A program made the translations under genes and the position numbers. A stretch of 64,000 nucleotides of DNA. Source: Lama guanicoe (Eukaryota). Shown one piece after another: positions 2,679-46,515 of the stretch; position 1 is the first letter of the stretch; every line of letters begins with the position of its first letter. Location: the NCBI GenBank assembly GCA_013239625.1, contig MU055785.1:7130001-7194000 (forward strand), in the 5' to 3' direction. The notes beneath the pieces are model-generated. The model was not told where the DNA came from. It searched no databases and saw only the letters and a list, made by a program, of their open reading frames with translations.

Positions 2679-3246
2679 TCTGTTTCTGAGTCTTCCTTTC
2701 ACAAGTCCAGATGACTCTGTCCATCTGGGTATTTTGAAATACACTTGGCAGACACTATGCAGATCTCAAATATAAAAATCTAAAAAGAAGCTGTTGTCTG
2801 AATGTGCTCACTCAGTAAGGGTCAGGAGACAGGATGCTACTCCAATCATTTGGAAGGGGGAATAGGTGCAGGATGGACTTAAATGAATCTTTCCTCTTGT
2901 TAGTTCTGACTCAGCTGAGATTAATATCCAGAGAACCCAGAGAAGCTAACATTAGCCAGCACTGGACTGTAGCCAGACCATTACAAGGACTGTTTGTTGA
3001 AATACTGTATGCTCCTTATTTTTCTCCTTCCTTCTCTGTTTCTGTCTCCTCTCCCTCTTCTTATCCTCCTTCATTTCCATCTTCTTCCCATATTTCACTG
3101 AACATTTCAAATGACTAGCATTCTCTCCCACCCCACCTCCATCGCCCCTGGGTGCTGTTTGCTGAGATGACAGACATCACTCCTGCCTTTTCTTACCCTC
3201 CCTCCTCCATCTTCCCCTCCTGCCCTCATCCTAGTAGCCGCCTCAC

Positions 3247-3422
3247 CTCCAGGTACCAGTGTTTTACCAGCCGCAGGAGGCTCTTTAGCTTTGCTGGCCG
3301 GTGTTTGATGAAGATTTTCTGCAGCTCACTGAAGGATGGGGAGAAATTTCCAGGGACATTGCAGGCCTTAATCAGACTCACATAGACCTCTGGCGGGGGC
3401 TGATATTTGGGATGACAAGGCT
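3247..3422 (-). CDS. OASL: OASL coding exon 3
   Basis: Acceptor ctcctcag|AG, OAS signature [22 protein letters not shown], donor GAG|gtgagg. Confidence 0.92.
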
Positions 3423-6400: not shown

Positions 6401-9233
6401 TTCCATTTTCTTTCTCCAATTGCATCCAGACTCAGGGTTTCCACCCTATGTGAGAGGGCCGGGGACGGCACCCTGTGTGTGGATGAAGGGCACATCCCCC
6501 TTGAAGGCTGTTCCTAGGCTGCCCTCCTTGCCTTTCCCTGTACTAAGATACAGGCAGAGAGAGAAGGGTATTCTAGCATAGGCTTCATGAGTTGCTTCAG
6601 TTAGAATCTAAACTATTTAAAGACAAGCACGCACTCATGTGGACCAGCACAGCTCACCAGATTTTCAGGGGTTGAGGGGAGGGTTTAGAGCCCAAATAAA
6701 ATGTTAACTTCTCATTGACCATTGCTTTTTGGGTGTCTCTATTACCGATTGGTTTCAAGGATGAAGAAATGGCTGTGGTCTGCAGTCAGGATCTGAGGGA
6801 TGGGTAAATACCACTTCCTGCCTTCAAACCTCATATTGTTTGAGGTATCCTCTCATCCCCAGACATCCCCCACTCCAACCCCATTATTCTCAGGGTTTTC
6901 ATGGGGGTGGTCTGGGAGGGTCTACATGAGTCACACTGATGTCCCAGGCCCAGAAGAAAGTTCGAACAAGAACTTATATCGATGTTTTTGTTTTTGAGCA
7001 TTGACTAATCTTGTAGCCTGCATCACCCCATTTACTTGATGAGAGACAGATGATGAAGGTGATGACAGTGTCACCCCAATTACAGATGAGAAGACTAAGG
7101 GTTTGAGAGAAAAGATCGTAAATCTAAGGTCACACAGCTGTAAGAGAAGATGCCAAGAGTCAAACCCACTTCTGATGTCAAAATGTATGGTTTCTCACTT
7201 AAATTGTATGGCTTCAGGATCCAGGTGCTAAGGATAAGAGTAAAGAAGTGATTTGGCCCTGAAGCTTCAAGGCAGAACTAGAGCATTGAGCTGGGAATCA
7301 GGAGTCCTAATGAGAGTCTTGCCTTTGTCCCCAGCTCGCTGTGTGAACTTGGGAAGTCGCTCACCCTCTCTGTGCCTCTGTTTCCTTAGTGTTTACATGC
7401 AGGATTGGCCAAGATAGTCTGTCTCCAGGGCCTTTTGTGTTGGGAAACTGGAGCTGGTGATTGAATTAAGAATATGTTGGTGGGAGGGTATAGCTAGTGT
7501 GTGTGCTTAGCATGCACAAGGTCCTGGGGTCAATCCCCGGTACCTTCATTAAAATAGAGAAATAATTAATCAGTAAAGAAACCTAATTACTGCATCCCCC
7601 CCAAAAAGGGGGGAAAAACCCCAAAAGAATATGTAGATTATGACCTGATGAATGAGGGGGCACAAGCCACCCACACAGTGTGGGCAGGTAGCTCCCTTAG
7701 CATCCAAACTCCCTCTGTGGGGAAATGAAACCTACCCAGTTGTTTGGATGGAAGGCCCAGTTTCAATACACCCATACAAGGAAAGTAGTCGTAAGATTGA
7801 TTACTTACAGATCCCAAAGGTCAGGGGACACAAGTGAGCCAGGGAAAGAGCAGTCCTCCGTCCCAGCCAGAAATGAGCCACAGAGCAGGGTAGAAGCACC
7901 TGTTACTTATAAGGTGGTTGGGGTGGAGGTTACCAGCTTTTCACAAGCTTAACTCTAAAGTGGTTATTTTAAAAAGTGCCCCAGGAAAGGCAAAGCAGGA
8001 ACTTGCGGGGGCATCCTAAACTCAAGCCCTTATCTAAGTGTCCAGATTCTGGGTATGAGTTGGGTCATCATACTGTAAAATGCGAGGAAAGCAAAATTAT
8101 TTTCCTTAAAAGTTGTTTTTCTCATCACACCTTTCTAATTGTTTGACCCTCTTGAATTATGATCCTAGCTAGGGGAGGTGACATGAAGCAGCTGGAGGAA
8201 GGACTTGGGGGAAAAAAATCTCCATGGAGGCAGCCTGGAGTGGAGTAAGATAGATCTTGGTTCAAATCCTAGCTTCACCACTAATTGTGTGACCTTGGGC
8301 AAGTTAACTTACCTCTCTGAGCTTTCAGTAAAGAAAAACTTTTCATTATCAAAAAATTTAAACATAGAAAAATAGAAAGCAAATACAATGAACACTTATA
8401 GCGCCAAACAGTCAGATTCAACAAGTCTAAATTTTTTGCTACACTTGTTTCAACGAAGCCACTTTAAAGTAAATACAGACACTAAGGAACTTAGTCCCTA
8501 AATACTTTAGCATTTGGGTCCAACAAAGAGAACATTTCCCCCCATAACCACAAAACTACTACACCTTAAAAAAATTCCCTTATATATGTTATCTAATATT
8601 CAGGCCATATTGAAATTTCCCAGCTGTCCTCAAATTATATTTCACAGATGGTCCATTCACACTAAGATCCAATCAGAGACCTTGCATTGCATTTGGTTGT
8701 TACGAACCTTGTCGTCACTGAGTTTCCATTTTGCTCTTCTGTAAAATGGGGAAAGAGTAATACATACCACACAGGGTACGCAAATTAGAGATAATACATG
8801 TTAAGGGGCTAGGCTAGTGCATCCAAAAAAGTGAACTATTATCATTGGCTTCCTTACTGGACTCATTCTGCTCAAGGCAGCAGTGCATTGGGGTGCCGGC
8901 AGCTAGGTGGAAGGTCTTGAGATGTCAGTGGCATGGGCTAGGGATAATGAGGCAAGAGGTCTGCCAGCATCCTCAGGGACGTGGACCCTCATGCTCGGTT
9001 GTGCGTGGCCCAGGGATGGAGGGCACCAGTCTCACCTTGATCACCTTCTGCACCCGCACCTCCTTGTCCAGGCTGCTCTTCCTCTGGAAGCAGTTCTTTC
9101 TCAGGGAATGCCCCACAGTCCTCACAACCTCCAGCACCTCCTTTTTCCACTCCTGACTGGGGTGCAGGCAGTGATGCACGAAGGCAGTCAGCTTGGAAGC
9201 AGGGGTGTCAAACAGCTCCTGTGGCAGTGCCAT
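3247..9233 (-). CDS. OASL: 2'-5'-oligoadenylate synthetase-like protein, exons 1-3 (gene continues beyond window start)
   Basis: Exons 9233-9036 ([15 protein letters not shown]...VQKVIK), 4688-4403 ([25 protein letters not shown]...[13 protein letters not shown]) and 3422-3247 ([20 protein letters not shown]...[15 protein letters not shown]). All are GT-AG with compatible phases and are strongly similar to human OASL. The catalytic Asp triad is replaced by E-x-E/T, as in inactive OASL. Confidence 0.93.
4403..4688 (-). CDS. OASL: OASL coding exon 2
   Basis: Acceptor ccgcag|GTGGGCTCCTTCGGG, donor CTGA|gtaagc, 286 nt. Confidence 0.92.
7482..7625 (+). mobile_element. tRNA-derived SINE (camelid Vic-1-like)
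   Basis: gggagggtatagct..gcttagcatgcacaaggtcctggg..caatcccc. Confidence 0.75.
9036..9233 (-). CDS. OASL: OASL coding exon 1
   Basis: ATG at 9233, 198 nt, donor AAG|gtgaga. Confidence 0.92.
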
Positions 9234-9513
9234 CTCTGTCCTGAGGGTACCAGTGTTGGAGATATATAGCCACACACCTACGCAGCTCGTGGCACACACC
9301 CTCTTCTTTAAGGGGGCTCCTCTTCAGCTGACCTCCGGCACCCTGTGGAATAAAGGACCAGAGTGCAGAGGACACCAGGGTGTCTGGCTGACCTGGGGCA
9401 CCTCTTTTTGGAGAGCGTCCACTGCAGCAGGGGCACTGAAGGACACCGAGTTTAGCCTGGAAGGTCTGGGGCCACCTTAACAGGAGTGGCTTTCGCTCAG
9501 CCTTTCCACTGAA

Positions 9514-9565
9514 GGTTTCATTTCTAAAGTTTTAGTTTCCTTTTTATGATTTGGAAACTGAAACT
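9514..9565. promoter_or_regulatory. ISRE/IRF element cluster of the OASL promoter
   Basis: Consensus ISRE GGAAACTGAAACT at 9553-9565, plus GGTTTCATTTCT (9514-9525) and AGTTTTAGTTTCC (9528-9540), about 300 bp upstream of the ATG. Confidence 0.8.
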
Positions 9566-12500: not shown

Positions 12501-14458
12501 AACCCATGTTACCTCATATCAGCCCGTTTCCTTCCAGGCACCCAGAGGTCCGCAGAGCTCTGAACACTCCCCCATTGAAAGGTACGAAAACTAGGGAGCC
12601 CGTTACCTGCTCATCTTCATCATTCATCTTGTATTCAGACAAGATGTAGCTCTGTTGGACTTGTGGCTCTTAGGAGCCTTCTCCATGAAGGAAAGCCATA
12701 CCCAGTCTTAAAGCTTACTCAGGGGACAGGAGCTTTCACCCAAATTCTGCCAAATGCCTAATATCACAACATTTTTTTCCATCCTCTTTGCCAGATGTAA
12801 AGCAGGAGGGAGATAGCTCATGGGGACTCTGGACCCAACAGACAAATGAAGGTTGTCGAGGTTGAACATGCAAATTCATGCATGAAATACAAGTGAATGC
12901 CATTGTCATAACTTAGTCACATGGTCACAGGGGAGATTGGGAAATGTAGTCTTCAGACTCTGGCGATGTGCCTACCTAAAAACTCTGCTGCTGTGGAAGA
13001 AGAGGAGAAAAGAATGTGGGGAGGGAGGAGAGCAGTTGCTACTACAAAATCCATTCTCTGTTTTTGCCATTTTGGCCCCAGACCAGAGAGGATACAGCTC
13101 TAGAGAAATCCCTCTTCCTCTACCCTGGGATATGAAAGGTGAGCTTGGAGAGGGCAGGGGAAGGAGCCAATAACAGCTCCTTCCACCTGTAAAAAGTGGC
13201 GATAATAAGAATACCTACATCCTAGGGCTATAATGATGCTCCAATGAAATGACGGCTGAAAAGTACTCAGTTAATGCCCAGTACATAGTGAATGTTCAAT
13301 AAATGTGAGCTGTTATTACAGTAGGGGAGATGAACCTCAAATCAGAATTGCTAATGATATGAGTATGAATAGCAAAAATCACAGGGTACACCATCCACCA
13401 GACGTGGCTAGAAATCTGAGTGTCCTTCCATTTCCTTGATTATTCCAGCGGATGTAACTTACACACGATGAAGTGCACAGACTTGAAGTGTAGTGGATAC
13501 TGTTATGCGCCACCCAGATCCCCGCTTCAGGACTGAGACATTCACCTCCTCGGCTGGCGGGAGTGTTGCTGCTGACAACGCTCACTTGGGTCCCTGCTTG
13601 AGCATCACCCTCAGTTAAAGGGAGGCTGCTTTGTCCATGGTGATACCCTTTTTCCTGGGGCTGCTTGCATGTAATGACTGACTGGCATTAGGGGTTTAGA
13701 GGTCTGGTCCCTTGCTTCAGCTGAGCACAACTCAGAACGGCCATCACACAGCTCCAGTGCTCCTGTGGGTTGGCTGAAGTCTTTGCTGTGACTGTAACAC
13801 ACTTCAGCTTTTCTTTCTGCTCAGTCCCGTTTCTTTCACATCTTTTCCAGGTGTTGCTCCTGAGAATTACCCTCTAGTAAACTTCCTGTACGTACGTGTT
13901 CATCTCAGAATCTGTTTCTCTGGGAACTCGATCTAAGACACCTGGATGTATGGCTGGGTAGAGTTTATGCATTTGCATATGCCCCTGTAGCCACCACTCA
14001 GATCAAGATAAGAAACCACTTCTAGTATCTCAGCAGGGGCCCTTCAACTGCGTGCTTATCAGTAACCCGCTACTGAGAACGGAGAGACAGCTTTGATTTC
14101 CCTCTTTCCCTCCTGTCCCACATTCTAACCATCAGCCATAGGCCTTGAATTCATCTACTTCTTTTCACCTCCCAGCCTCCCCTGGCCCAACTCATTATCA
14201 CCTCCCCCTGGACAACGCAATAAGCTTCTAAAGTGAGATTCCATTCGTTTCCCTGCCTTGAAACCCAATCGGTCAGTTTCAGACCATGTCAAGCTCTTTC
14301 CTCTCTCCAGGGAACGCACATTGGCAGATTTTTTTAAGCAGGTGAGGGTTATGTTCATATTTATGCTTCAGAAAGAGCACAGTAGCCTGGGGAGAAAGGG
14401 GTGGGCAGGGGGACAGGACCATGGAAGTCTACATCACGAGCAGCCCGACTGTAGGCAC

Positions 14459-14768
14459 TCATGGGGACTTGTGGCCTCTCTTAACAAGTGTGATGGTGTC
14501 ACAATCCTTGAGGTGCAGGTCTGAGAGGCTATTTTGATGGCACAGTTTATCCTCCACATAAGGTCCTCCAGCCTCTTCAGTGTTCTTTTCCAAGTCACAG
14601 CTGGAGTCATCAGGGCCCATGCCATAAGGCTTGCTCTGGTGGCTGGAGTCCATCATGAAGGCCTGGATCTCGGGAGGGAATGTCTGCAGCACCCGGACAC
14701 TCACTTTAGAGAAGACCCTGTATCTGCCAGGGTCCACCAGCTGCTGAGCAGTGCTGCTCCCCTCCAGG
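14459..14768 (-). pseudogene. OASL2P: OASL2-like pseudogene remnant: terminal ubiquitin-like exon
   Basis: Frameshifted translation PGGEQ.LLSSWWTLA.YRVFSKVSVRVLQTFPPEIQAF...PYGMGPD...IE/TEEAGGP...LKDCDTITLVK matches the tandem UBL tail of OASL/Oasl2. It lies upstream of OASL in the same orientation, its 5' part is replaced by L1-derived sequence, and no other OASL2 exons are seen. Confidence 0.75.
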
Positions 14769-14989
14769 CAGGAGGGGAAGGAGAGACAGTGCTGCCCACT
14801 GAGGGCACATGTCCTCTTGTTTTCGTCATTTTGCCTTTCCCAGAATGTCATATAGTTGGAATCATTCAGTGTGCAGTCTTTTCAGACTGGCTTCTTTCAA
14901 TTAGCAATAGGCATTTAAGCTTCCTCCATGTTTTTTCATCACCACCAGCTTCATCCATCACCACCAGCTTCATCCATTACCACCCATAG

Positions 14990-16350
14990 TTACAAATTAC
15001 TATTATTTTTCTTGTGATGAGAGCTTTTAAGATCTACTCTCTTTGAAACTTTCAAATACACAACACAGTATTGTAAACTATAGTCACCACGCTGAACAGT
15101 ACACCCCCAGGACTTATTTAGCTTATAACTAGAAGTTTGTACCGTTTGACCACTTCCAGCTACTTCAACCACTTCCCACCTCTGGCAACCACTGATCTGT
15201 TCTATGTATCTATGAGGTTGTTTTCTTTTCCTTTTTTAAGGTTGTACATATAAGCTATTTCATACACTATTTTTCTTTCTCCGTTTGACTTAATGCACTT
15301 AGCATAATGCCCTCGAGGATCGATCGGTGTTGTCACAAATGGCAGGATTTCCTCCTTTTTATGTGGTGAATAAAATTCCATCGTGTATATATACACCACC
15401 TCTCCTTTATCTGTTCATGTGTTGATGGACACTAAGTTGTTTCCATGTCTTGATTTGCCCACTTTAAAATCAGATTTTTTTTTTTTTTGCTGTTGATTTG
15501 TATGAGTTCCTTGTAGATTTGGGATATTCACCTCTTACCGTATACACGATTTGCAAATATTTTTTCCCTTTCCTAGGTTGCTTTTTCATTTTGTTGATTG
15601 TTTAGCTCGCTCTCCAGAAGCTTTTCAGTTTGACAGAGTAACATTGCTTTTTGTTTTTATTGCTTGTGCTTTTGGTGTCATATCCAAAAAACTATCACCA
15701 AGACCAAAGTTAAGGAGCTTTTTCTTTACACTCTCTTCTAGGAGTTTTCCAGTTTCAGGGCTTACATTTAAGTCTTCAAACCATGGCAAGTTAATTTTTA
15801 AAAAAAATTTTTGGTGGAGGCAATTTATTTGCTTATTTTTAGAGGAGGTGCTGGGGATTGAACCCACGACCTTGTGCATGCTAAGCATGTGCTCTACCAC
15901 TTGAGCTATACCCTCCCCCTTAAGACAATTTTTATAGGTGGTGTTAGATAGTGGTCCAGTTTCATTCTTTGGCATGTGGCTGTCCAGTCTTCCCAGCATC
16001 ATTTACTGAAAAGACTGTCTTTTCTCTGTTGAGTATTCTCAGAGATCCCTTGTCAATTAGTTGCACCTGTGTGGGTTTATTTCTGGGCTGTTAATTCTGT
16101 CCCATTGGTGTCTGTGTCAGTATTCATGCCAGTACCATACTATTTTGATTACTGTAACTTTCCAGTATAGTTTGAAATCAGGAAAGCAATGCCTCCAGCT
16201 TTGTTCTCAGGATTGCTGTGGCTATTCGAAATCTACTGCAGTTCTGTACAAATTTGGGGATTGTTTTTTCTGCTTATGTAAAAAAAAAATGCCATTGGAA
16301 TTTTGATAGGGATTGCACTGAATCTGCAGACTGCTTGGGTAGTATGGACA
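14990..16350 (-). mobile_element. LINE-1 3' fragments, interrupted by a SINE
   Basis: Minus-strand translations resemble the L1 ORF2 C-terminus (KEEILPFVTT; EDLNVSPETGKLLEESV..KLLNFGLGDSFLDMTPKAQAIK) and L1 3'UTR. Confidence 0.8.
15815..15920 (-). mobile_element. tRNA-derived SINE (camelid Vic-1-like), nested in L1
   Basis: Reverse complement ggggagggtatagctcaagtggtagagcacatgcttagcatgcacaagg..gttcaatcccc. Confidence 0.8.
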
Positions 16351-16779
16351 TGTACTTGCTGGGTAAGATGTATGTATACATGATTTGCCTAAGACTTATT
16401 GAAAGCAACAAAAAGTCAAACTGCTACGTTAGAAAACAGTAAACATGTGGAATGTGGGCTCCTGGTGTACAGTCGGGATGGTCCAGCCTCCTCCAGGTCA
16501 GAGAGGTGGGTGAGAAACAGCAATTCCAACAGACCAGGATGATCCTCCCTGCTTACCCCTCCCCCTGGGCCCACATTATCCTGGGCTGCATCTTTTAAAG
16601 CCCAAACACACTTTTAATGTCCACGTGTTAGTCCTTCTAGCCATCAGCTATGCTTCTCTCCACACCCCATGAGCCGGGTCACAGGAGACTGTAAACACGT
16701 CTGGTTTCCCGTGTCACCACTCATACAAGCCAGTGCTTTTTCACATTTGATCGACAGACTGCAGACTGAGAATTATGCA

Positions 16780-19700
16780 AAAGAACAAGAACAAAACTTT
16801 ATTATAAGTTATAAAGGCGACACGAGGGTCGTGGGGGGAAAATGGGGAGAGGGGAGGAGTCAGCTGTAGGCAACAGGGGTGTCCCCCCGCTCTAGGACCC
16901 GAGGGGACAGGACAAGGGCCTTTGTCCTGAGCACTCTGACCACTGGGATGAGACAACAGCCTCAAATCAAGCATCTTTGGGAACAAGATCGTAGGCAGGG
17001 AGCGGGCACAGAATGCTGTACAGAGGGTGCCCAGGCTGCCCCAGGATTACCGAGGTTAGGACTAGACTTGTGCTTCACATCCAAATGGGGCCTACACAAG
17101 GTCCAGCCTGGAAGGAGGATGGACACTGATGCCTCTCCCCAGAGTTAACAGTTCAGGCCATCACTCGCCTCTTCGACCCCAAGGGAGTGGATCCCAAGCT
17201 GGAGGAAACTGACTTGGTTGGCCGCTCAGCAGTTTTGTGTCCAACCAAGGCCTGGACGGGTGATGAGGGGGCCCTCACAGCAAGACTGCTCCTTGCTGGG
17301 CCCGCTGAGGAGGCAGGGCTGCTGGCAGAGGCCAGGACAGACACGCCCCTAAGGGCAGCCTTGCTGGGGGTGGTGCCGTCCCTCGGCTGGCAGTAAAGGG
17401 GCTCTGCCTGGGTGCGCCCCCGGGCATGTGACTTAAGATGGGGGCAGTGGGGCCTCCACATCCAGGCTGGTTCTTAGTGCTGGGTCCTGTGGGCAGCATG
17501 GGGGTGCTCTGGCGAGGAGGGCCCTGGGCGCTCAGGCCCACGCTTCCCCTGCAGCAGTGTGTGGTGCTCGGGTTCCCCTTTGCTCCTCCTGTAATGCTGA
17601 GAGCTGCAAAGGGGCAGCTCAGATCTAGGTCGGCCACTTGGCTCCTGAAGCCTTTAGATGCTGCCGAGACCTCGAACCTGAAGGGGGCTGGGCTTGAGAT
17701 GGCAGATGTTGAGCAGTGCCCGCAAGTGTGGGGTCCAGCCCTGGTCACAGTGCTGGGCACGTAGGTGGCAGCTGCAGAGCCGGGGGGAATACAGTCGAGG
17801 TGGCAGCAAAGATCGGTTGGGTGCTGGCGCGGGTGCCCACAGAGGAGTTTGTGGGTGATGGAGCATCAGAAGATGCTTGAGGGGGGGCAAGGGTAGCGGA
17901 CCTGGAGCAGAGAATGCGTCCCAGGTTGGGGCTGGAGCTGGCCATTTTCCGTACTGGGGACAGCTGTCACAGGCAGTGGCTCTGCGCTGCTGCCCATCAG
18001 GGGCTGCAAAGATGGGCTCGGCAGAGGCTCCAGGGGTAACAGGAAGTCTCAAAGGTGGGCTGGGTTCGTATAACATGAGCGCAAACAGGCAGGCAGTGAG
18101 GGTGACTAAGGCTATACCATCACTGGGGGTGTCTGCAGGGACTGCATAGATGGGAAGGTGCTCCCACTGGAGATAGGGGGAGCCCCCAAAACAAGAGGTT
18201 GGGAGGGTGGAGTGGTGTCCATTGGGGTGACCTCAGTGTTCAGAGCGGTGGTGACTAAGTCCATGCTACCACTGGGGGATGTCTGCAGGGTCTGCATAGA
18301 TGGGAAGATGCTCCCATCAGAGATAGGGAGAGCCCCCAAGAGGAGATGCTGGGAGGGTGGGGTATTGTCCATGGGGGTGACCTCAGTGTCCAGAGCGGTG
18401 GTGACTAAGTCCATGCTATCACTGCGGGCGTCTGCAGAGCCTGCATAGATGGGAAGATGCTTCCACTAGAGGCAGGGGGAGCCCTCAAGAGGAGAGATGC
18501 TGGGAGTGTGGAGTGGTGTCCATGGGTGTGACCTCAGTGTGTGGAGCTGGCGGAGGAGCCAGGTCTGCAGAGGTACTGGTCCAGGGGCTGGAACTGACAG
18601 CAGAGGTGATCAGCAGGCTGGTGGGGGGAGGGGCACTAGGGTTGGTGATGGCGGGGACTCTGTGAGGCGAGGACAGGAGAGTCTATACACATGGGTGAGG
18701 GGGACTCCGTTCTGGAGGTGCTGGGGGCTGCAGGGAAGGCAGATATGGCACCGACTGCAGCGGGGACAGTGGCCTTGGGTGGTAAAGGGCCTCCTCCTGC
18801 CCCCTTCTTAGGAGGCTCCCAGATGGGCTTCAACTTGAAGCGGAGGAGGGAAGCCTAGCAGCAGCGGGAGCAAGCCAGTCAGCAGCTGCCAGGCCTGGGG
18901 CAGAGGGGGAGCAGAGCCCGAGGGGCCTGGGGGCCCAACAGACAGGTCAGCCCTGTCTGACACCAGGTCAACAAGGCGAGTGGGGCTGAGGGCTGTGAGT
19001 GTGAAGAGGTGCCTGGAAGGGGCTGTGACAGGGAGAGGAGGAGGCCTGGTGAGCTGTGCTTCCTCTCAGACAAAGGATGCACCGAGGTGGCCCCTCCAGC
19101 AGATGCCCGGATGTTCACTGGGGCTGGGGGGGGGTCCTGCCTCCCCCTGCATCCCTCTAGCGGTGGATTCCTGCTGGGGGCTGGAGGGACAGCGGGCAGA
19201 GGAGCAGCCTCTGAGGCAGGCAGGAGGAAGGAACAGGAAGGTTGTGCGGTGCTGGTGCCGCAGCCCCAAATGGCCTGGGTCTCACCCCGCAGCATAGCTG
19301 TTGATGTGCTGGAATGCTGGCTTCCTTCTCCAAGTCTAGGTCTTCAGCGGTGACTCAGAAACCCAGTTCAGAGGGTAGGGGCAGCCTCAGGGGCTCCTCT
19401 TGCCTGTGTGGCAACAGGAATCCTGCGTCTTCAGGGCCTGGGCCCATCAGATGTGAGTGAGCAGTTCTTTCAGGCTCTTTTCTGCCCTCTTGTTCCATGT
19501 GCATCCTAGTCAGGCTGGTTCTTCTGCTGGGAAACCACCTGAGCTGCAGAGGGAGGCTGAGGGCTCTCCTCTCTTCTTTTCTTTGAGGACTTTGGGGGCA
19601 ACCAGGTGTGTGCAGGACCCCTCTTCCTCTGCACTGGCGGGAAGCCTCGGGTGGAACTGTATGAGCCCCTGATGGCATTTCTTTGGCAGAGGAGTTCATA

Positions 19701-20394
19701 GAGGAGGTCTGGGATTTCTTGTTGGATCTGTCTTCTAAGCTCTTGGTGTGGAGGTTTCTCTGTAGAGACCCAGGACTTGACATGTGAAGCAAGAGAGGCC
19801 TCTTGGACCCACAGGTGCCTCATTTCAGGTTGTTCACCCCTAGTGCCATGTGGGCTCCTCTGATCCTCCTTCCTCTCTGATTGCCGGGTCTTTCTCCTGC
19901 TTGGCCATCCCTTTCCTGCTCTTACCAAGGGCCCTCCATATCATCTCCGCGCACGAGTCCCGGGCACACCTGGGTGATGTGGGCAGCTTAGGGGTGAGTA
20001 GCTGTTCCTGCACAGCACAGACAGTAACTGTGCCCACTGAAGTCACTGAGCTGCAGGACATCATGGAGGTCTGAGCACATAGCACCGCCTTCCTCTGATG
20101 GCCTCGCCTGCAGATGGAGCTAAGTATGCCCAGAAAGGAGCGCAGGGTCTGCGAGATCATCGAATGTGGTCTCAGAGATGCTATGACCAAGCGTGGATGC
20201 AAAGTCACTGGATACTTATAGGCTGGCCTGCAAGTGGCTAGCAGCTCATGGACAGCTGGGTGACCTGGACAAGCCGGGGGAAATCGGCGAGCAGGGGGAG
20301 CGGGCTAGAGGCAGCCGAGCCCTCCTGGCAGGTGCTGGCCCCCCGGTGCCCCGGGCAGGGCCGAGGGGCAAGATCTGCCCAAGTAACTGCCTAT
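16780..20394 (-). pseudogene. Intronless POM121-like (POM121L-type) retro-pseudogene
   Basis: Broken ORFs give POM121 motifs: (I)GSYLGRS (ATG>ATA at 20394), PGSLQRNLHTKSLEDRSNKKSQTSSMNS, RNAIRGSYSSTRGF, LLPHRQEEPLRLPLPSELGF, KPIWEPPK, PAPFRF. Several frameshifts and stops, last stop near 17153, AATAAA at 16803-16798. Confidence 0.85.
18102..18540. repeat. About 3 tandem copies of a 150-bp (50-codon) unit inside the POM121-like sequence
   Basis: gtgactaag recurs at 18102, 18251 and 18401; the translation repeats MDLVTTAL(D/N)TEVTPMD(N/T)TPPSQ. Confidence 0.9.
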
Positions 20395-20530
20395 AGAGCA
20401 CTTGGATAAGGTCAGTCCTTGGATAGAGAATTGGGCTCTGAGCTCTGCCCTTTAGCTGCCAACTTTGTCAAAGGCCAAGCACACTGGCCTGTTGCCGGGA
20501 CGCAGCTCTGTAACCTGTGAGCATAGAATG

Positions 20531-20800
20531 TGCGCTTGTGCACAGGGCCCACGCGGGACGGCGCATGCGCAGAAGACACGGTAGGGGGTGGGGGGTGGCC
20601 CAGGGCTGTATACGTGGGGATGTGCCCACAGCCCACCCCGCCCACCCTTCCCCCAACCCTTTGGCGCTTCCGAGTCTCCTGCAGTCCGTGAATTAGAGGC
20701 TTTTGCCTTGAGGACGATGAGCGTCTACCCTGGCAGGGCCCCAGAGCTGTCTGGGAACTAACTGTACAGGACGCCCCCCCACCCCGCCCCGCCCCCCGGC
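20531..20800. promoter_or_regulatory. CpG-rich promoter-like region with NRF1 motif(s) and a GC box upstream of the POM121-like retrocopy
   Basis: GCGCATGCGCA at 20561-20571, TGCGCTTGTGCA at 20531-20542, CCCCGCCCCGCCCC near 20783. Confidence 0.5.
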
Positions 20801-21883
20801 AGAGCGGGAATTGCTGGGGAGCAGGGTACCTGGCTCAGCGGCCGCTGCAGAAGGTAGCAGCTTTGGCATCAGCGCCTGTCCATCCTCTCGCCCTTTCCCT
20901 GGGTGCCATCGGAGGGGAACGCCGCTCAGAAGTGCCCATGCCACCGAGATCCTGCTAGGGTGGCAACTGAAGTGGCGGCTGGGGTAGCCTGGGAGGGACA
21001 TATATACTATATATATTTCCCAGTGTCTGTGGGAGAGCAGGAGCCTAACTTTGATGGGTACTAAATAGCACAGAGAGATGTCTTCATCACCAAGAAAAAC
21101 CATTGCAAACTCGGGCATAACTCAATGTGCTGGACACACTCCATAGATCAACCTCACCTCAGCACTGAAAACTCCCCTGCCTTTTGTTTCAGGGAAGCTG
21201 AGCTCAGACTGAGTCCTGGCCTTTTCCCCTTATTGCAATAGCCTTAGATATCATCTTCCTTGTCTGTTTAAACTTTCTTGGGTGCAATTTTTGCTTTGAT
21301 GAAAGTAAAGGGTAGAAGACTTACAGCAATATAGACTTTCTTACCCTTTGGCCTTTATGTTATAGTAGCCATGTGTAATATATCAACATGAACTGAACTT
21401 CACCTTCTGAGACTGGGGTATCACTTTTTAATTCAAATGTCACATATATAATAAAAGAATTGCAGAGGAGAAAAATAGGCTATCTCATTTATCCAGATGG
21501 TACTTCTGGTGCTTTGTTCCTTTCCTCCTGAAGCTCTGATTTTAGAAACTCTTGTGTCACTTGACTTCAACCTGAAGAAGTTCCTTTCTCATCATTTTGT
21601 ATTGAGTTACCCGATAATGAACTTTTTTGTTTCACCTTCACCAGACTTGGCTTTATTTTCACGTTTGTTTTGCCGTCAATTTTGGAGGAGATCTTTGCTA
21701 CATTAGTGTCCTGGGTTACTAGTTCTTTTCTTTCAGTTGTTGAAAGACCTTATTCCCGCTTCTGTTTTCAGGTGAGAAATCACAGGTCTTGAAACTGACA
21801 TTCTTTTATGTATAACTGACTGCTTTCAAGATTTTTCTTTACCTTTGATTTTTTTCGCAAGTCAATTAAAATGTGTCATGTTC

Positions 21884-22010
21884 AGGGGGAGGGTAGAGCT
21901 CAGTGGTAGAGTGCATTCTTAGCATACACATGGACCTGGGTTCAATCCCAAGTACCTCTGTCAAAAATAAAGAAACCTAACCACCCCCATCAAACAAACA
22001 AAGAAAAAAG
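21884..22010 (+). mobile_element. tRNA-derived SINE (camelid Vic-1-like)
   Basis: ggggagggtagagctcagtggtagag..gggttcaatccc. Confidence 0.75.
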
Positions 22011-23278
22011 ACCCCAGCAGATTGTCGCTGACATCCATCCATCTATCTACACACACGCATGCACACACACACAAGAAGTGTCAGGTTGAAGGCTTTCTAA
22101 TTCTGTTGGAAATGAATGCCAACATTGGACACTCCTCAGGTTGTCAGAAATCCTGAGGTTGTCACTGGATCTCTCTAGCCAGTGGAAAGTGAAAATAATT
22201 GAGCAGGTAGACAGAATGCATGGCCCAATCAGAGCAGGCGCCCATATATTCCTTTTGCATTTAAGTTGGTTTATCTCTGCTCTTTCCACAGTCAATAAAA
22301 TCTTTCCACAGAAATTTTTCCTGAACTCCCAATTCAGGATTCAATAAATGACCCATCTTAATCCATATCCTGTCTCATGGTAGTTCACTTATTAACAAAT
22401 TTTGAATGAGGAAAATAAGCAACCTAAGACAAATGGGCAGTATAATTTTGAAGTACTTAGCTTTTTTCCCATCTGTATTGCCCACATCCTATCCCAAGTC
22501 AGTTAGACACACATTAGTATTATATTTCCTCCCTAGAAATCTAAGGAAAATGGCAAGATTGTGTTACATATCTTGAGGAAATCAACATTAGAAATAGGTG
22601 GTTTGCCTACAACAGAGATTCAACTTGAGGCTTCATTATGACAAAAAGTTCTTGAACTTGGGCCAGGGTTAAGAGGAGGTGGGAAATGTAACCGAACAGG
22701 ACCCTATGGGGGCTTCCTGGGACAAACTCCACCCCACCAGGGCTTCTGCCTGCTTGTTCGAAAAAAAAAAAACTTTAGCCTCCCAGGCCCTCCCCAAATT
22801 TCAAAGAATAAATTTAATACATTTAATCAGAAGAGAAGGGGACACTGGGTGGAGGTTCTTACCTGGCAATTTCAGCATCCTTGGGTTCACCTAGAAGACG
22901 AGCTCTCAGCTAAGGCTTCAAATCTGTGATCTTGGAAATCAACATCCTCCGCTGCCAACTGAGCCTGATGCAGTTCTTCCAAGAAATCTCAGAGCATAGA
23001 GGACCCCCCATGAGGGTCCTTCTGCGGTAAACTGATGCAGTGAAGACAGCAGATGTGTCCGTGTTTCACGTACCTGGGTGTGTGGTCTTTTCTGTTTGCC
23101 AACCAGGACTGAGTCGCCAAATTAGCTAACCAGGTGTCCACAATTCAATTCTGACACTAACTACCTACAGCTGGAGTCAGACCCCACAGGTTTAAGGGTT
23201 CAGTTCTACAAGACTGCCTCCACCTTCAGATGCCAGTCACAAATGGGGTATTCAAGCTACTCACTACCTACCTGACCC

Positions 23279-23444
23279 NNNNNNNNNNNNNNNNNNNNNN
23301 NNNNNNNNNNNNNNNNNNNNNNNNNNNNNNNNNNNNNNNNNNNNNNNNNNNNNNNNNNNNNNNNNNNNNNNNNNNNNNNNNNNNNNNNNNNNNNNNNNNN
23401 NNNNNNNNNNNNNNNNNNNNNNNNNNNNNNNNNNNNNNNNNNNN
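23279..23444. other. Assembly gap (N run)
   Basis: Run of N, flanked on both sides by LTR-like repeat sequence. Confidence 1.
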
Positions 23445-24242
23445 TGGAGAGTTTCCAGCCCAGAACAACAATGTATCCGTCAAACTAGAAGATTCCCTGA
23501 ATCTCTTTCAAGAGTTTTTATAGCCCAGTCTTCAGGCCTCTCCCCTCACAGATGGCCAATGTTCTAGATCCTTGAACCAACTGCATCTTTGATCTCTCTG
23601 GTGACCAGCCCCATCCTGATGCAATCTCAACACCCTCCCCCATCACCTTATTAGCATCATAAACACAGGTGCAGTCCCAAGGAATTCAGGAAATTCCAAG
23701 GGCCTTTAGGAGCCCCGTGCCAGGAACCAGGGATGAAGAAGAAATGTATTGTTTATTATGCCACAAAGGGCTTCTCAAAAGAGGCAAGGCAGAAAGGACT
23801 TCCCCTTGTGTCTTCCAAGGTGGCTTCTCGAAGGAATAGTAGCTGGATAGGTTAATGAGATCAGTTGCAATTTAAATGTTATTGTTTCCTGAAAGCCTTT
23901 CATCCTTAACATGGAAATAGTTCACATGTCCTCATTTAATGTCATTTCTAGTTTTAAGCAATGAGCACACAAAATAAAGGGTACACAGTCCAAACCTAGG
24001 GAGATTTGAAATGTGCGATTTGGAATCAAAGTCTAGAATCATCTCTGGGCTTTGAGCTGAGGTGGAAGGAGAGTAGCCAAACTTAACAGCGTCTCCAGCT
24101 CCACCTGCAGCTCCTGCCTGGCTGGGACATGACCCCGGAGCAGAGTTGAGTTCAAGGGGTAAAAGAAGGGGGCACAACTTTCCATCTTCTACATGAGCGC
24201 TCACCAAAAATTATATCATGCCAGGTGTTTTGTGGAAAAATG

Positions 24243-24769
24243 TGTTACAGCTCAGTTGTGACAGCAACCTGGATCCGGGAAAGAGACCAAGCAGCACTTA
24301 AGAGGGTTGGAGAACTCAGGTTTATTTCACCAGGGGGCCCAGAGCAGTGGACACTTCTAGCTCTGGATCCCGTCAGTAGGGTTACACAGGCCTTTTATAG
24401 GCTGCCAGTTTTACACTTTGCAACATCATATGCAAATAAAGTATAACAGAAGTTGACCAACCAGGAACAAGCTTTGTAGAAGTAGCCCAATCAGGAGTGA
24501 GCTCCATGCAAATGAAGTACTACAAATGGACCAATCAGAAGTGAGAGTAATAACCAATTAGGAGTGAGAGTAATAACCAATCAGGAGTGAAGGAAATAAC
24601 TAATCAGAAGTGAGCTCAGGGAACCAATAGAATTCTAGGTTTAAGTTAGCCGTTTTAGAGGCAAAAAGTGAGGTAAAGTCTCTGGGCCAGGGAACCAGAC
24701 GGTGCTGGGAGGAGAGCAGCGGCCCTGCCTGTGGGTCCTGCTGGTATTTTTACGGGGCTTCCTGCCTCA
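24243..24769 (-). mobile_element. Solo ERV LTR with tandem CCAAT boxes
   Basis: TG...CA ends on the minus strand, repeated ccaatcaggagtgag units, TATA (cctataaaa) and AATAAA; homologous to 39486-40044. Confidence 0.75.
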
Positions 24770-27213
24770 GGTGCACATGTAATTTTGAATATTCTAATAA
24801 ACAGACCAGGAAAATGAAAAATGAAATGGTTGAAGTGAATGCAAATTTTTTTTTAATTCAATAGAGGCAAAAATGTTATAATTTCTACATGTGGTCACAT
24901 TTCAAGGGCTCCACAGCCACACGGAGCTAGTTGCTGCCATGTTGGGTAGCACAGACATAGATCATGTCCATCACAGAAATTTATACTGGACAGTCTGTTC
25001 AGAATATATATCCCAGGCTACTTTCATTTATGAAAATGATGAAATAATCCACTCCTTCAGGGTGGGTATTGAAAATCACATCTAGGCATAGTTCTCCTAA
25101 ACACAGTGTCTGACAAAGTTTGCATACATATTGCCAGATATAGGGTTGGTACTCAGTAATGGGTTAATTTTTTTTTTTAATGGAGGTACTGGGGATTGAC
25201 CCAGGACTTCATGCATGCTAAGCACTCGCTATACCACTGAGCTATACTCTCCCCACCCCAGTAATTTTTTAAAAACTTTTTTTTTTTGAGTTATAGTCAT
25301 TTTACAATGTTGTGTCAAATTCCAGTATAGAGCACAATTTTCAGTTATACATGAACATACATATATTCATTGTCACATTCTTTTTTGCTGTGAGCTACCA
25401 CAAGATCTTGTATATATTTCCCTGTGCTATACAGTATAATCTTGTTTATCTAACCACCATTTCTTAATGTTGGCATTTTGCGTGTTCCGTTGACTTTCTT
25501 TTGGTCATTTCAAGTTTGGAAATATTCACAAACACACAAGAGTAGTGAGAATCATGGGCTTTACTTCTGAGATAGGAAATCACAAATAATTCATATATAA
25601 TCATAATACTTTCCCCTTCTCGATGGTATACCATGACTCATATCAATTTCCTTGGTTTTCTTCTTTGTATGATGTACAATCAAGTTTGCTCCTTTCAACT
25701 TCATAATTTTTTAAAACTCAGCACTTGTTTATTCTCTCAATTTTTAAAAGTTCATCCCGTGGTAAAACCTCTGGGGAAAAAAGCTCAAAAAAGAAAAATA
25801 AAAAGAAGACAATGTGTTTTAAAGGTAAACTCATCTTTAGAAAAAAATCAGTTTTGTTCCTTTAAATAGGCATCAGAGAAGACCATAAATAGAAATGAAT
25901 TGGCCAAAATGGATACTTTCTAAATCAGAAAACCTTGGCATTGATATGTCTGAAAGTGTTGACTTGAAAAAAATAGATATTCCTCCAGCAAAGATGGGTT
26001 TATTTGGGATCAGCAGAGAAGTGCAGTTTAGGGTCTGGAACCATGGTGAGGCACGTGCAAATGCCCTAAGTGTGAGAGAAGGAGACCGATTTTATAGAGA
26101 GGACAAGGAAGTGGGGAGTTCATGGCTCGTTGCCTGAGTCCTTGCCAGCAAAGAAGAGGAGTCTTTCTTCTTATTGGGCTCTGCTCTGGTCACAGGGCAT
26201 GAGAACACCCGCTCTGGTCTCTCAACTCTATTTAATTGAGGTTTCTATTAATTTGTTACAAAAGCATCATGGTCAGGATTTGAAAGCAAGCCTCATCTTC
26301 TGCAGGTGTCCCCGATGAATGAAACCATGAACAAAGGAACATAGGGTACATCTGTCTGGGTCATAAATAAGTGTGAGTGGGTAAATACCACCCACTTAGT
26401 CAATGGATACAATTATGTTATTAATTCAGAATTTATTTTTCAGCTTAAAACAATAGCCATTTACCATCACATAGTTCTGTAAGTCAGAAGTCCCTTCTGG
26501 CTAACTGGGTTTCTTACTCAGGTCAGGGAGTGTGAGGCTGTTCGAGTTCTTCAACTGTTAAGGAGATGTCACCTGGAGAACCAGGAGAGTGCAGGGAGGC
26601 AGAAAACCAGGAGAAAATAGACAGCAAATCAGACTGATTTCAAGTGATTAAATTCAATTATATGTCAAGCCAACAGTAGTTGTTCATTGTTTACTATTGA
26701 CTTGATATCCCTTGCAGTTCATAACCAAGATCACGGCCACACACTCAGTTCTCTGCTAAGTTCATAGATGATTCTAAACCACCACCACCAACAAAATAGT
26801 GACAGATTATTTAAGGAATATTTATAAATTGTCCTGGGAGAGCAACATAAAGCAATGCTTTGTCCTGGGACAAAAGAAAAGATTCCTAGAGGAAGGAATA
26901 GTTAGTTGATTGGGGCGTTGGGGGTGGTCAAGTCGCACTGGCCATGTCATTCAGGGGTAAATGTTCCCAGGGAGAAGGAAGGCTGAACGTTTACTTGTGG
27001 ATTTAATCCGCTGTCATTTTGTAAACAATCCTGTCGGGAGCATGTAGTCAGGATATCCCTGGTTATCAAGAGACAGAGACATATACAGAAGTGAGCAGCT
27101 GCAGGGTCAAACGGGTCCTTGTCTTCTGGTGGGCGTTTCATAAAGTAGCATCTAGGAAGCAGGGAGCCTGGATCAGAACGGGGAGGAGCGACGTCCTTTC
27201 ATATACTTTGACA

Positions 27214-27231
27214 TAGCGCCACCTAGAGGGC
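27214..27231 (-). promoter_or_regulatory. CTCF motif
   Basis: Reverse complement GCCCTCTAGGTGGCGCTA is a near-consensus CTCF core. Confidence 0.6.
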
Positions 27232-28008
27232 GGCTGTGAGATGGCCTTGACGTACTTGTATTATCTCTGCAATGAAACGTTGTTAAGTCTGTCTGCAACA
27301 GTCAAGAACTAAAACCTGTCCAGGCTTTTTATATTGGAAGAAAAGAAGCCAAAATATGTGAGAACAGATTTAACAACAACAGCAGCAAACTCTCAAATTT
27401 CATTGAGGATTCATTATTAATAAGGCTATTTTTTAAATGTACAGTTTATGAACGTTCGTTATGACCTTCCCATATTTTGAATCTCAAAAACATTGAAAAT
27501 AAGCGTCATGATTTTTGATTCACCTACATTTTTATATTTCCCTGGGCAGTAACATATTAATTCATAATAGCCCCAATTTGGGAATGACCCAAATATCCAT
27601 CAGCAGTAGAATGCATCAGTGTGCAGTGTGTTACTGCAGTGAAATACTACAAACAATGACCTACCACCATGTGCCACAACCCAGACAAGTCCCTCCGGCA
27701 TACTATTGAGCAAAAGATGGTGGACACAAAGTATGTACAGTATGATTCCACTGATAGCAGGTTTGAAAACAAGCAAAGCTAATTTGTGGTGACAGACAGG
27801 ACAGTGGTTCATCTGCGGGGAGTGTGGACTGGGAGTGGGCAGCTTGCTGGGGTCCCGGAAATGTGTCCTATTTTGATCTGGGTGTGGCTTAAAAGGCTAT
27901 AAAAATGCACTGAGCTGTATTCTTAAGATCATGGTCCTTTACCTGATGTAAATGATGTCAGTAAAAGGGGAAGGGATGATGGCAACAGACAGGCAAACTG
28001 AAATTTCC

Positions 28009-31000
28009 CTGTTGATACCAGTACTTTACGGAGAGGATCAAATCCTACAGTTTTCTGGGATGGTTGTTAAAAAACTTCTCCTGGAGTTTGGTGAAGCAGA
28101 CTGAGAACTCACCAGGGCTGGCTTTTGTCATATCCAAGGATCTTTTGAGCCCTCAAGAGAAACACAACTTTTGGTGTTCCTGGAACCTGGCCTCAGTGAG
28201 CCCACAAGGAAGGTCGGATGTGGTTTGATAGCACACATCCTCTGCTTAATCTGTAAGAGGTCTGGTGTATCTGCATGAAAGGTGAGGGCTTGCTCATTCT
28301 GCTGGATAATAAAACAAAGTCTAAAGTAACTGTTGTGGAAAAAAACAAGTAAATAAAATGACTGTTGAGAAGGTGGCATGGTTGCTGCCAAAAGACGTGC
28401 TGAATGGCACCAAATGGAGTGACGAGAAACACAGAAACGAAAAAGGGGAGTTCCAAAAGAGTAGGGAAAGAATGGTTACTTTAAAAATGGTGTTGGCAAG
28501 AAAGAGAAAGAAAAATACCGTATGAGATCACTCATATGTGGAATTAAAAAAAACATAAATACAAAACAGAAACAGACTCAGACATAGAATACAAACTTGT
28601 GGTTGTCAAGGGGATGGGGGGGTGGGAAGGGACAGACTGGGATTTCAAAATGTAGAATAGATAAACAAGATTATACTGTATAGCACAGGGAAATATATAC
28701 AAGATCTTATGGTAGCTCACAGAGAAAAAAATGTGACAATGAATATATATATGTTCATGTGTAACTGAAAAATTGTGCTGTACACTGGAATTTGACACAT
28801 TGTAAAATGGCTGTAACTCAATTAAAAAAGTTTTAAAAAGTGGTGTTGGCAAAACAGATTGACGGACATACAAAACAAAGTATGGTTATCGGTGTGGGGA
28901 AAGGGCTGGGAGGGATAAATCAGAGCTTGGGGATTAACAGACACACACACACTATAAATAAAATAGATGAACAAGGACCTACTGTAGAGCACAGAGAACT
29001 GTATTTAATTTCTTGTAATAACATATGATGGAAATGAATCTGAAAAGAAAAAAATTTATGTATGTACATGTATCACTGAATCTCTTTATGGTACACCTGA
29101 AACTAACATTGTAAATCAATAACACTTCAATAAAAATTTTTTAAAAATTAAAAAAACGGTGTTGGCACCATTGGCATACACCCGGAAGAAGATGAAGTTT
29201 GTGTCTCACATACAGTATAGGTTGCTGTTCAGCCTATCCAGTGAATGTTTGAGATCAGAGAGTCAAGGGTACAGGCAGGTGAGGTGAAGGCAGAGCACTG
29301 GAGGCCGGGGATGGAGGCCAGTGGGCAGGGTCACTCCCTGCAGAGCTGGACCACCTGAGATAAGGGTGATACAAGGCAGTGGTTCTCAAACTGGGTGCCT
29401 AGCAGAATCCTGCTGCACAGCTAATGTGGAACACAAGCCCAGGAGCCGCCTGTGTCAGTGAGCCTGGGCCTCTGGGTTGCAGATTAGCTCTGCAGGAGAT
29501 CTGACCCCCAAGTGGGAGAGAGCACAGGGCCTCTGTTTTTCTTACTAAGTTCCCCAGGAGATTCTGATATCCACTGACTTTTGAGGACCACTGATGTGGG
29601 AATGCAAAAACAAATAAAATAGGATGGCAATAGATTCCAGAATTTTATCACAGGATTAGCTCTCTCACTCACGGAGCCCTACTGTTCACACAACCAGGAG
29701 ACAGCAGCCAGAGAATTTATTCTTTCCGTTCGCCTCGACAGGTATTTATTGACTTCCTACCAGTAGCCAGGCACAGTTCTGGGCACTTGGCGTGCAGGGC
29801 GAGTGAGGGAAAGAACATTATCTCCTCTTGAGGGCTTACTCTATGCCAGGCACAGTTTAAGCCCTTCGTGTTCAGTGAAATATGTGGGCCTCGTGAAACT
29901 CTTGCGTGGTTAGTGCAATGAGCTGCTCATTTACAGATTTACAAATTAAACTCAAACACCAAGAAGTCAAGTAAATGGGGGTGTCCTGCTTTGGGTCAAA
30001 GACCCTGGGGAGAGAGCAGTGGTGGCCCGCGGCAGTGGAACGAGACGTAGAGTTAAAGGAAGTTGGTGTGGAGAATAGGCCAGATTAGTTAGGCTAATAT
30101 TTAGCAAAAAAAAAAGAGTAATTTAAAAATTCCCTAGTAGGTTGCTTTTCTCAGAAAGTGTCCATTATTGTTTCCTTCTAAAAAAGGACTGTTTGGAATG
30201 TGCAGCTCTTCCGCCATCTGCTGGCAGCTTCTGGTTACTACACGTGAGGAAGAGCGGCTCATTCTTATAATGATGTAGTGAGCCCAGCAGAGGGCGCTCT
30301 GGTCTGGCTCCTAACCACTCTGCAGGGAACCAGAGGGAGAGAACACAGGATTTCTGAGTCACACTGTGTCTCTTCACCTTGACTTCAGCCCTTGTTTGAG
30401 GCAGGCACATACTCTCAACCCTAATTGTCCTAAAGTCTCGGCTAAGTAACTGTTTCTAATCTGATCTTTCTAGCCCCTTAAGACTGTTTTTTGGCCGCAG
30501 GAAGCACCCTTGTCAGCAACGGAGAAGTGGACGTGAGACTGGACCCTTTGGAGTCACAGGGCACCCCAGCAGGCGGCAGCGTTTCTCAACTCAAGCAAAA
30601 GCCCCCAGTGTCAACACGGTCGTAAAGCTGAGTGGCAGGTGTTCATCTGTCCACCCAAAGACCAGAATCGGGGTGCACAGCAGCACTTTTCATGTGAGCC
30701 CCAAGCTGCGTGCAGCTCGAACAGCCGTCCACAATAGAATGGACACGTGTGGTGTCCCCACACACTGGGCACACGACAACAATGGATGATAAACCACAGC
30801 TGCGCACGACATCAGACATTCCACCAACAAATGGGTTGAAACATCCACACGCTAAAGCCGTACAGGGCATGACTTGTTTTATAAAGGCGGACCTACCTGT
30901 CTAGTTTACCCAGGGCAGTCTCAGTTTTAGCACCCAGAAGCCCGTGACCCAGGAAACCCTTCAGTCCTGGGCGGACCTGGATGGTTGGTCACCTTGTATG

Positions 31001-32243
31001 TACACAAAGTTTAAAAACAGGCAAAACAGATCTATGCTGTTAGAAGTCAGGAGAGTGTTTGCCTAGGGTTAAGGGCAGTGACTAGATAGGGGCTCTTGGG
31101 TGGGGGCTGGGAATGTTTTATTTCTCCATCTGGATGTAGGTTACATGCGCATGTTGTTTGTGGCAATCCATCAGGCTGTACCCTTAGATCTGCACCCTTT
31201 TTGTGTGTACTATTATAATCAGAAAAAAGTTAACAATATTGAGAGGTAGGATTGCGTGGTGGTTAGGGTGCATGCTCCCAAGCAGATTACCTGAGCTTAA
31301 AATCCAAGGTCAGGTGCCAGCTATTAAATAACTTCCTAGGGCCTCAGTTTCCTCTTCTGGGACAAGGCAGGTGGCACCAAGTGTCCAGGTATCTTTACTG
31401 CTAGGACTAGTGGGAGTGTTTCAGGGCTGAGGCCAGAAAGCACTCAGACTGCAGAGCAGGGGACTCAGTACCAGAGACCATGGGGCTTGGCGTGGGCATC
31501 CATAATCCCCTCCGCACCCCAGGGTCCTGACAGCTTCCCAGAGCCTTCCCTTACTAAAAGATGCAGAATCATCAGCCTCAGCCCTGGGATTTGTGCCCAG
31601 AACACCAAACATTTCTAACTGATGAGAGCCCCCCACCTGCTTACTGTTGAGAAATCGCAGAGCATCCTTGGGTAGTTTTACTGACGTTTTATGGCCTCAA
31701 TTTACTCCTTTGTAAAATGGGAACAATAAAAAACCGTAGTAGCAATCACAGTTAATTTGATTGCACTAAATATGTACCAAACGCTGTGCAAGAAGCCTCG
31801 TAACACTTTGTGATGAGTAGTATTCCTCTCCCATTTTATGGATTTGGACACTGAGGCACAGAGAGGTTAAGCAACCTGCCCCAGGTCACACAGTAGTAAA
31901 GGGCAGAACTCCCCAGGCTGTACCCCTAAACACTACACCAGATCCCAGCATCTCACTAGAGCGTGGGGAAGAGAAGGTGATGGATGTCTTGTGGGCCCGG
32001 AGCCTGGCACTCAGTAGGTGCTCAGCACCAAGTCGCCCTGACTTCTGGATCTCAGAAGCCCAGATCCCAGCTCTCTACTCACTTTGGCCTTGGCTACCAC
32101 CAGGGGGAGCGGCTCGGACAGCTGGCATCCACGGTCTGGTCGATTTGTCCCTGACAGTCTTCCTAGGGCCTCAGCTTGTTCTGGATGAACTCGCGCAGCT
32201 TCTGAGCAGGCAGTGAGCAGAGCTGGGACTCCCACTTTCCCGT
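28009..32243 (-). pseudogene. OAS2: OAS2 pseudogene, exons 1-3 only
   Basis: Exon 1, 32243-32083: GCC-ACG-G (ATG>ACG) then GKWESQLCSLPAQKLREFIQNKLRP*EDCQGQIDQTVD, plus a frameshifting deletion. Exon 2 start, 30508-30470: GASCGQKTVLRG*. Exon 3, 28149-28009: LKRSLDMTKASPGEFSVCFTKLQEKFFNNHPRKL*DLILSVKYWYQQ, with donor GT>GG. These match human OAS2 domain 1. Confidence 0.9.
28510..29155 (+). mobile_element. Two LINE-1 3'-end fragments
   Basis: Typical artiodactyl L1 3'UTR (tatagcacagggaaatatatacaagatc..., actgtagagcacagagaact...) with A-rich tails. Confidence 0.7.

Positions 32244-36308: not shown

Positions 36309-46515
<10,207 letters not shown>

Follow-up and report, generated by a model that had tools for sequence, protein, structure and literature searches.

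Here, we describe a 64-kb stretch of the Lama guanicoe genome (contig MU055785.1 of assembly GCA_013239625.1, positions 7,130,001 to 7,194,000; hereafter the window, in whose own positions all coordinates are given) that carries OAS1 and OASL together with the remains of two dead relatives, OAS2 and OASL2. Read along the minus strand, the order is OAS1, OAS1, a broken OAS2, a spacer, a broken OASL2, and OASL. In human, the OAS1/3/2 cluster (plus strand, 12q24.13) and OASL (minus strand, 12q24.31) are separated by approximately 8 Mb. We consider it fairly likely that the window holds one junction of a camelid-specific rearrangement that cut OAS2 in intron 3, and that this rearrangement probably proceeded through one large inversion. 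The locus is real, and the inversion is a plausible though unproven reading of it, in which the breakpoint on the OASL side needs revision relative to a first-pass annotation of the same DNA. The join of OAS1 to OASL, and hence the supercluster, is already published at the gene level (Eckhart & Sipos, Vaccines 2023, 11:419, PMC9964502); what appears to be new is the base-level anatomy of the leftover gene fragments.

The first-pass annotation had proposed a co-oriented series of two OAS1 genes, an OAS2 pseudogene, an OASL2 pseudogene and OASL, with approximately 19 kb between the OAS and OASL parts. Both proposals were borne out. All OAS-family sequence in the window lies on the minus strand, as determined by tblastn with named reference proteins and by profile hidden Markov models (HMMs) across its whole length, and the distance from the end of OAS2 coding similarity at 28009 to the start of OASL exon 1 at 9233 is 18.8 kb. 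For reference proteins, a set of protein cluster representatives was searched with a profile built on the conserved third exon and the key matches were then named; further named OASL2 and OAS2 references came from two word-index searches. Spliced genes were compared with the references exon by exon; joined models were neither built nor searched. The window contains two assembly gaps, at 23279-23444 and 41915-42042.

The OAS2 remnant opens with exon 1 (32079-32243, minus strand), which aligns to residues 2-42 of pig OAS2 (66% identity, E-value 2e-11) and, at E < 1e-4, matches OAS2 proteins only. Its start codon has changed from ATG to ACG, a TAG stop occupies 32163-5, and the frame shifts near 32118. 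Exon 2 is reduced to a stub of 16 codons around the P-loop motif (30464-30511, minus strand), interrupted by a TAG stop at 30470-2; 11 of its 16 residues are those of rhino OAS2 (E-value 0.004, 4 kb searched). An OAS2 profile gives a mere trace there, and the remainder of the exon is lost. Exon 3 (28009-28149, minus strand) is best preserved, with alignment to residues 164-222 of pig OAS2 (E-value 2e-21), 89% identity across 46 aligned residues, and a score of 90 bits with pig OAS2 as compared to at most 47 bits with OAS1 or OAS3. It too is damaged, by a TAG stop at 28045-7 and by a splice donor changed from GT to GG. Exons 1 and 3 are closer to domain I of OAS2 than to OAS1, OAS3 or OASL. The pseudogene had been described as comprising exons 1 to 3, which is correct for the first and third exons and overstated for the second.

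A sensitive profile built from ten OAS2 proteins, which picks up every OAS1 and OASL exon in the window, found no OAS2 exon 4 or later anywhere in it, in agreement with the absence noted previously. Because these later exons are missing and the remnant has accumulated three stop codons, a lost start codon, one frameshift and one dead splice donor, the OAS2 copy is a truncated pseudogene and not a gene, with neither a complete first domain nor the second OAS domain (exons 4-11). OAS2 proteins were found in pig, peccary, whales, hippo and ruminants, and there was no camelid OAS2 among the 120 best hits.

OAS2 coding similarity runs from 32243 and stops at 28009, which is the end that had been assigned to OAS2 homology as a whole. 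The homology itself goes further, to at least 27558. Read-through frames that carry OAS2 exon 3 on contigs of other species (P0140, P0143 and P0129) align to 27558, 27830 and 27825, respectively, and the segment 27558-28008 (minus strand), the start of OAS2 intron 3, is alignable to the same intron of other mammals. The OAS2 side therefore extends at least 450 bases past 28009, and the end of OAS2-side similarity falls between 27558 and the first gap. As previously claimed, the coding similarity stops in continuous sequence about 4.5 kb before that gap (4,565 bases measured). The proposed break in OAS2 intron 3 is likewise supported, by at least 450 bases of intron-3 similarity with no later OAS2 exon following.

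On the other side, the OASL2 pseudogene is represented by its last exon, which encodes both ubiquitin-like domains (approximately 14459-14926, minus strand) and sits approximately 5 kb upstream of OASL. Against 17 eutherian OASL2 proteins this exon shows 33-50% identity in tblastn, mostly 41-50%, with E-values down to 8e-35; the best match is dog OASL2 (50%, E-value 8e-35), and identity to OASL proteins reaches only 20-30%. In the tree it is nested in the eutherian OASL2 clade with support of 96/97, on a terminal branch of 1.08 as compared to a median of 0.21. Three in-frame stops lie near its 5' end (14915-7, 14897-9 and 14882-4), and the native stop is kept. No OASL2 exon 1-5 was detected between 14.9 and 28.0 kb with an OASL2 profile HMM that recovers all OAS1 and OASL exons of the window, and the pseudogene is for this reason a single-exon remnant. 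Its identity as OASL2 thus stands as annotated, by tblastn and by the tree, while its extent shrinks to the last exon. The breakpoint proposed 5' of OASL and OASL2 is not supported as stated. With just the last OASL2 exon in place, there are two positions for the OASL-side break: within the OASL2 pseudogene itself, or further upstream, in which case exons 1-5 were lost by a separate deletion. A chimeric gene joining OAS2 exons 1-3 to OASL2 exons 4-6 was also considered and is ruled out by the absence of OASL2 exons 4 and 5.

The last OAS2 intron-3 similarity (27558) and the last exon of OASL2 (14926) define the limits of the interval that must hold the junction or junctions from OAS-side to OASL-side DNA, a bracket of 12.6 kb (14927-27557). 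Profiles of OAS2 and OASL2 revealed no OAS-family exon between 14926 and 27558. The 166-N gap at 23279-23444 lies inside this interval, and no shared repeat or tandem repeat connects its two flanks. On the OAS2 side of the gap, 19 runs, drawn from 9 studies and representing 4 coded organisms, contain 81-87% of the sampled words of 23445-29444.

The spacer, measured as the 13 kb between the OAS2 and OASL2 remnants, contains two pieces of other gene families. The larger is an intronless, frameshifted block of the POM121 family (approximately 16400-21000, minus strand) that stands out in the GC profile as GC-rich (55-66%) and matches Pfam family PF15229 (POM121) in two frames at 19358-19940, with 31.7 and 40.3 bits against a cut-off of 27. 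Three copies of a 150-base repeat lie within it, at 18125-18573. No target-site duplication or other insertion hallmark of a retrocopy was found for it. The smaller piece, beside the gap, is a weak RFPL/TRIM-like fragment (22913-23081, minus strand) in which a decayed RING is followed by an RFPL defining motif (RDM). The RING part (23007-23081) matches PF15227 with an E-value of 4.1e-5 and 24 bits, below the cut-off of 30, and the RDM part (22913-22987) matches PF11002 with an E-value of 0.008 and 16.6 bits, below the cut-off of 27. Though both matches are sub-cut-off, they are adjacent and in their natural order. Searches of a protein atlas and of solved structures with the POM121-like and RING pieces returned no match. 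The Pfam scans of the spacer left out the reading frame at 20696-21121, and 21019-21058 was masked in later profile and self-comparison runs. The POM121-like and RFPL-like pieces may have adjoined OASL2 for a long time, may have been inserted later, or may have been captured in the rearrangement.

Assignment of the RING fragment to DTX1 is ruled out, given its TRIM C3HC4-type cysteine spacing and the RFPL motif that follows. A Pfam search of 104 stop-free stretches of the spacer, in which the DTX1 reference protein was not used as a query, revealed neither a WWE nor a Deltex domain, and thus gave no indication of DTX1. An inverted repeat pair of 187 bases, 90% identical between copies (25267-25452 and 28658-28839), encloses OAS2 exon 3 along with the initial 2.5 kb of the spacer; the repeats are probably 3' ends of long interspersed elements (LINEs).

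The two remnants differ in their divergence from intact relatives. The OAS2 remnant differs from non-cetartiodactyl outgroups at 27.6 of 87 sites, within the 24.6-31.8 of 87 sites at which the intact OAS2 of pig, whale, hippo and ruminants differ from the same outgroups, and hence it has no excess amino-acid divergence. The OASL2 exon has diverged from outgroups at 75% of sites in its first ubiquitin-like domain and at 47% in its second. Most intact OASL2 proteins show a difference of 27-39%, with the fast-evolving mole and shrew at up to 46%. The approximately 60 OASL2 clusters listed include none from a cetartiodactyl. With moderate confidence, these observations suggest that OASL2 was inactivated first, perhaps before the camelid lineage branched off, and that the cut in OAS2 followed.

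The favoured model proposes that a rearrangement would have broken OAS2 within intron 3 and set the block of OAS1, OAS1 and the 5' part of OAS2 head-to-tail before the last exon of OASL2, by then a dead gene, and before an intact OASL. This was probably achieved by a single large inversion within the chromosome arm, spanning the segment that corresponds to human OAS2 to OASL. One large inversion is the simplest model, since a deletion would leave the two loci, which occupy opposite strands in human, in opposed orientation. The inversion, the death of OAS2 through the same event and the prior inactivation of OASL2 are what we infer from the order, orientation and decay of these pieces. As first put forward, the inversion hypothesis is retained in part: the genes have the order and common orientation expected at one end of an inversion, and the break on the OASL side is not supported as stated.

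Several observations weigh against this model. The 166-N gap falls within the very interval to which the junction is confined. A spacer as long as 13 kb, with POM121-like and RFPL-like pieces in it, is not what a simple two-break inversion would leave behind, unless these pieces had lain upstream of OASL2 beforehand or arrived by later insertion. The ancestral orientation is taken from the human map and not from cetartiodactyls, and the inversion is deduced from one junction in one window. Finally, stop density is alike in the two remnants, with 3 stops in approximately 120 codons of OAS2 and 3 in approximately 155 codons of OASL2; owing to this similarity, the earlier death of OASL2 is read from amino-acid divergence alone.

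Of the alternatives, the strongest is a real rearrangement that was not a simple inversion, i.e., an event of at least three breaks, a transposition or a duplication, in which third-party RFPL-like and POM121-like DNA came to lie between the OAS2 and OASL2 remnants. We regard such a complex event as possible but rather unlikely. It would account for the 4.6-kb POM121-family block and the RFPL-like RING/RDM fragment in the spacer, neither of which the human map would place near OAS2 or OASL; the block lacks the target-site duplication of a simple retrocopy insertion, and the missing OASL2 exons 1-5 would also fit. However, the two fragments may have long resided upstream of OASL2 or may have been inserted later, the RFPL matches remain below the Pfam cut-offs, and one inversion suffices for the published gene order. 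In a related proposal, to which we give similarly low credence, the junction is not that of a clean two-break inversion, either because the OASL-side break fell inside the old OASL2 pseudogene or because a foreign RFPL/POM121-like segment was captured. If the break was inside OASL2, the reciprocal end would hold OASL2 exons 1-5 in line with OAS2 exons 4-11. With either an OASL2-internal break or a captured segment, the region beside OASL2 would emerge as a fragile site of re-used evolutionary breakpoints.

Improbable, in our view, is an inversion whose OAS-side break lay downstream of OAS2, with OAS2 exons 4-11 and OASL2 exons 1-5 deleted separately. Local deletions did happen here, as most of OAS2 exon 2 is gone, and the data from the window fit a break and a later deletion equally. 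Yet this scenario requires extra events, the intron-3 similarity passes smoothly beyond exon 3, and the lack of excess amino-acid divergence in OAS2 fits a relatively recent inactivation. A misassembly at 23279-23444 that glued together distant OAS-cluster and OASL scaffolds is very hard to sustain: the gap does lie exactly within the junction interval, but the OAS1-OASL tandem is reported in three separate camelid assemblies (PMC9964502), the truncations of OAS2 and OASL2 both fall in continuous sequence, 4.5 kb from the gap on one side and 8.4 kb on the other, respectively, the OAS2-side flank occurs in many independent samples, and order and orientation would have to imitate the product of an inversion by chance.

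The preferred reading, a rearrangement through OAS2 intron 3 that probably involved one large inversion, concerns the same event and the same gene losses as those described by Eckhart & Sipos. They reported that Camelus bactrianus (Bactrian camel), C. dromedarius and Vicugna pacos are without OAS2, OAS3 and OASL2, that OAS1 and OASL are in an "unusual tandem arrangement" ascribed to recombination in the camelid ancestor, and that OAS2 was probably lost during this recombination (PMC9964502). The text of that paper mentions no remnants, pseudogene exons, inversion, DTX1 or breakpoint. Beyond it, the window provides the remains of OAS2 exons 1-3 and the lesions in them, the last exon of OASL2, the content of the spacer and the 12.6-kb junction bracket.

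Loss of multi-domain OAS genes is also known from other Cetartiodactyla, as artiodactyls lost OAS3 and toothed whales carry OAS2/OAS3 pseudogenes (PMC9854896). The camelid case resembles these in being a lineage-specific loss of such genes, and differs from them in that camelid OAS2 is physically truncated at a rearrangement junction, whereas the other losses are reported as point-mutation pseudogenes or absences. The internal order of the guanaco locus, with OAS1, a possible trace of OAS3 and then OAS2, and with OASL2 followed by OASL, is like the ancestral mammalian layout as seen in human. In human, megabases of DNA and a change of strand separate the two loci; here they lie 19 kb apart in one orientation.

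Camelids are the reservoir of Middle East respiratory syndrome (MERS) coronavirus, and OAS proteins belong to the front line of viral RNA sensing. The origin of a camelid repertoire consisting of OAS1 and OASL only is therefore of interest to comparative immunology. What the window adds is the physical scar of that origin, i.e., the surviving OAS2 and OASL2 exons, their lesions and the junction bracket, together with a hint that the death of OASL2 preceded the cut in OAS2. These remnant details leave the biological picture unchanged and render the inversion model directly testable in other genomes.

The window covers exons 1-3 of OASL, and exons 4-6 fall beyond position 1. Exon 1 (9033-9233, minus strand, ATG at 9231-9233) has an open frame with 83.6% identity to residues 1-67 of Camelus OASL (P0021), exon 2 (4401-4697, minus strand) has canonical splice sites and 91.9% identity to residues 64-162, and exon 3 (3238-3402, minus strand) has acceptor AG, donor GT and 94.5% identity to residues 169-223. 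For exon 3, the best solved structure is that of human OASL (4xq7, E-value 1.8e-26). With open frames and canonical splice sites, these three exons look intact. An exact match to the interferon-response consensus, GAAACTGAAACT, is located at 9554-9565 (plus strand), approximately 320 bases upstream of OASL exon 1, and a second element resembling this consensus is present at 9516. As OASL has an interferon-response element of its own, the join need not have altered its regulation. Over exons 1-3, 22 of 221 residues differ from Camelus OASL, and exon 1 is just 84% identical; so high a difference between two camelid tribes suggests fast evolution of OASL.

At the other end of the locus, OAS1 copy A (48223-58467, minus strand) and the six-exon copy B (36312-46515, minus strand) were delimited on the tblastn map, and the second gap (41915-42042) sits in intron 2 of copy B. 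The OAS1 exons are near-identical to an alpaca OAS1-like protein from the supplement of a paper, and the terminal exon of copy A (48223-48510) is that of the alpaca model printed there. Taken with the 84-95% identity of the OASL exons to Camelus OASL and the near word-for-word presence of 23445-29444 in the 19 runs, this identifies the DNA as that of a New World camelid (alpaca, llama or a close relative) and not of a camel. Downstream of each OAS1 copy lies an OAS fragment that resembles exon 2 (35219-35338 and 48253-48339, minus strand), the one after copy A serving as the terminal exon in the alpaca gene model. The two fragments (region 35401-35774 / 48409-48772) are paralogous and approximately 13.0 kb apart, within the tandem duplication. 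Between OAS1 copy B and the OAS2 remnant lies a degenerate OAS exon-4-like piece (33391-33549, minus strand) with its best match in domain II of OAS3 (Sapajus OAS3, residues 654-702, 47% identity, E-value 2.8e-5). By its position and similarity, this piece is possibly a trace of the OAS3 lost in artiodactyls, in the ancestral order OAS1-OAS3-OAS2.

Two Camelus proteins named OAS1 (P0211 and P0212, of 756 and 785 residues, respectively) are two-domain models that resemble read-through fusions of tandem OAS1 copies. Such fused models could pass for OAS2 or OAS3 in surveys of the gene family. Residues 348-384 of P0212 map to 46533-46643, immediately upstream of exon 1 of OAS1 copy B.

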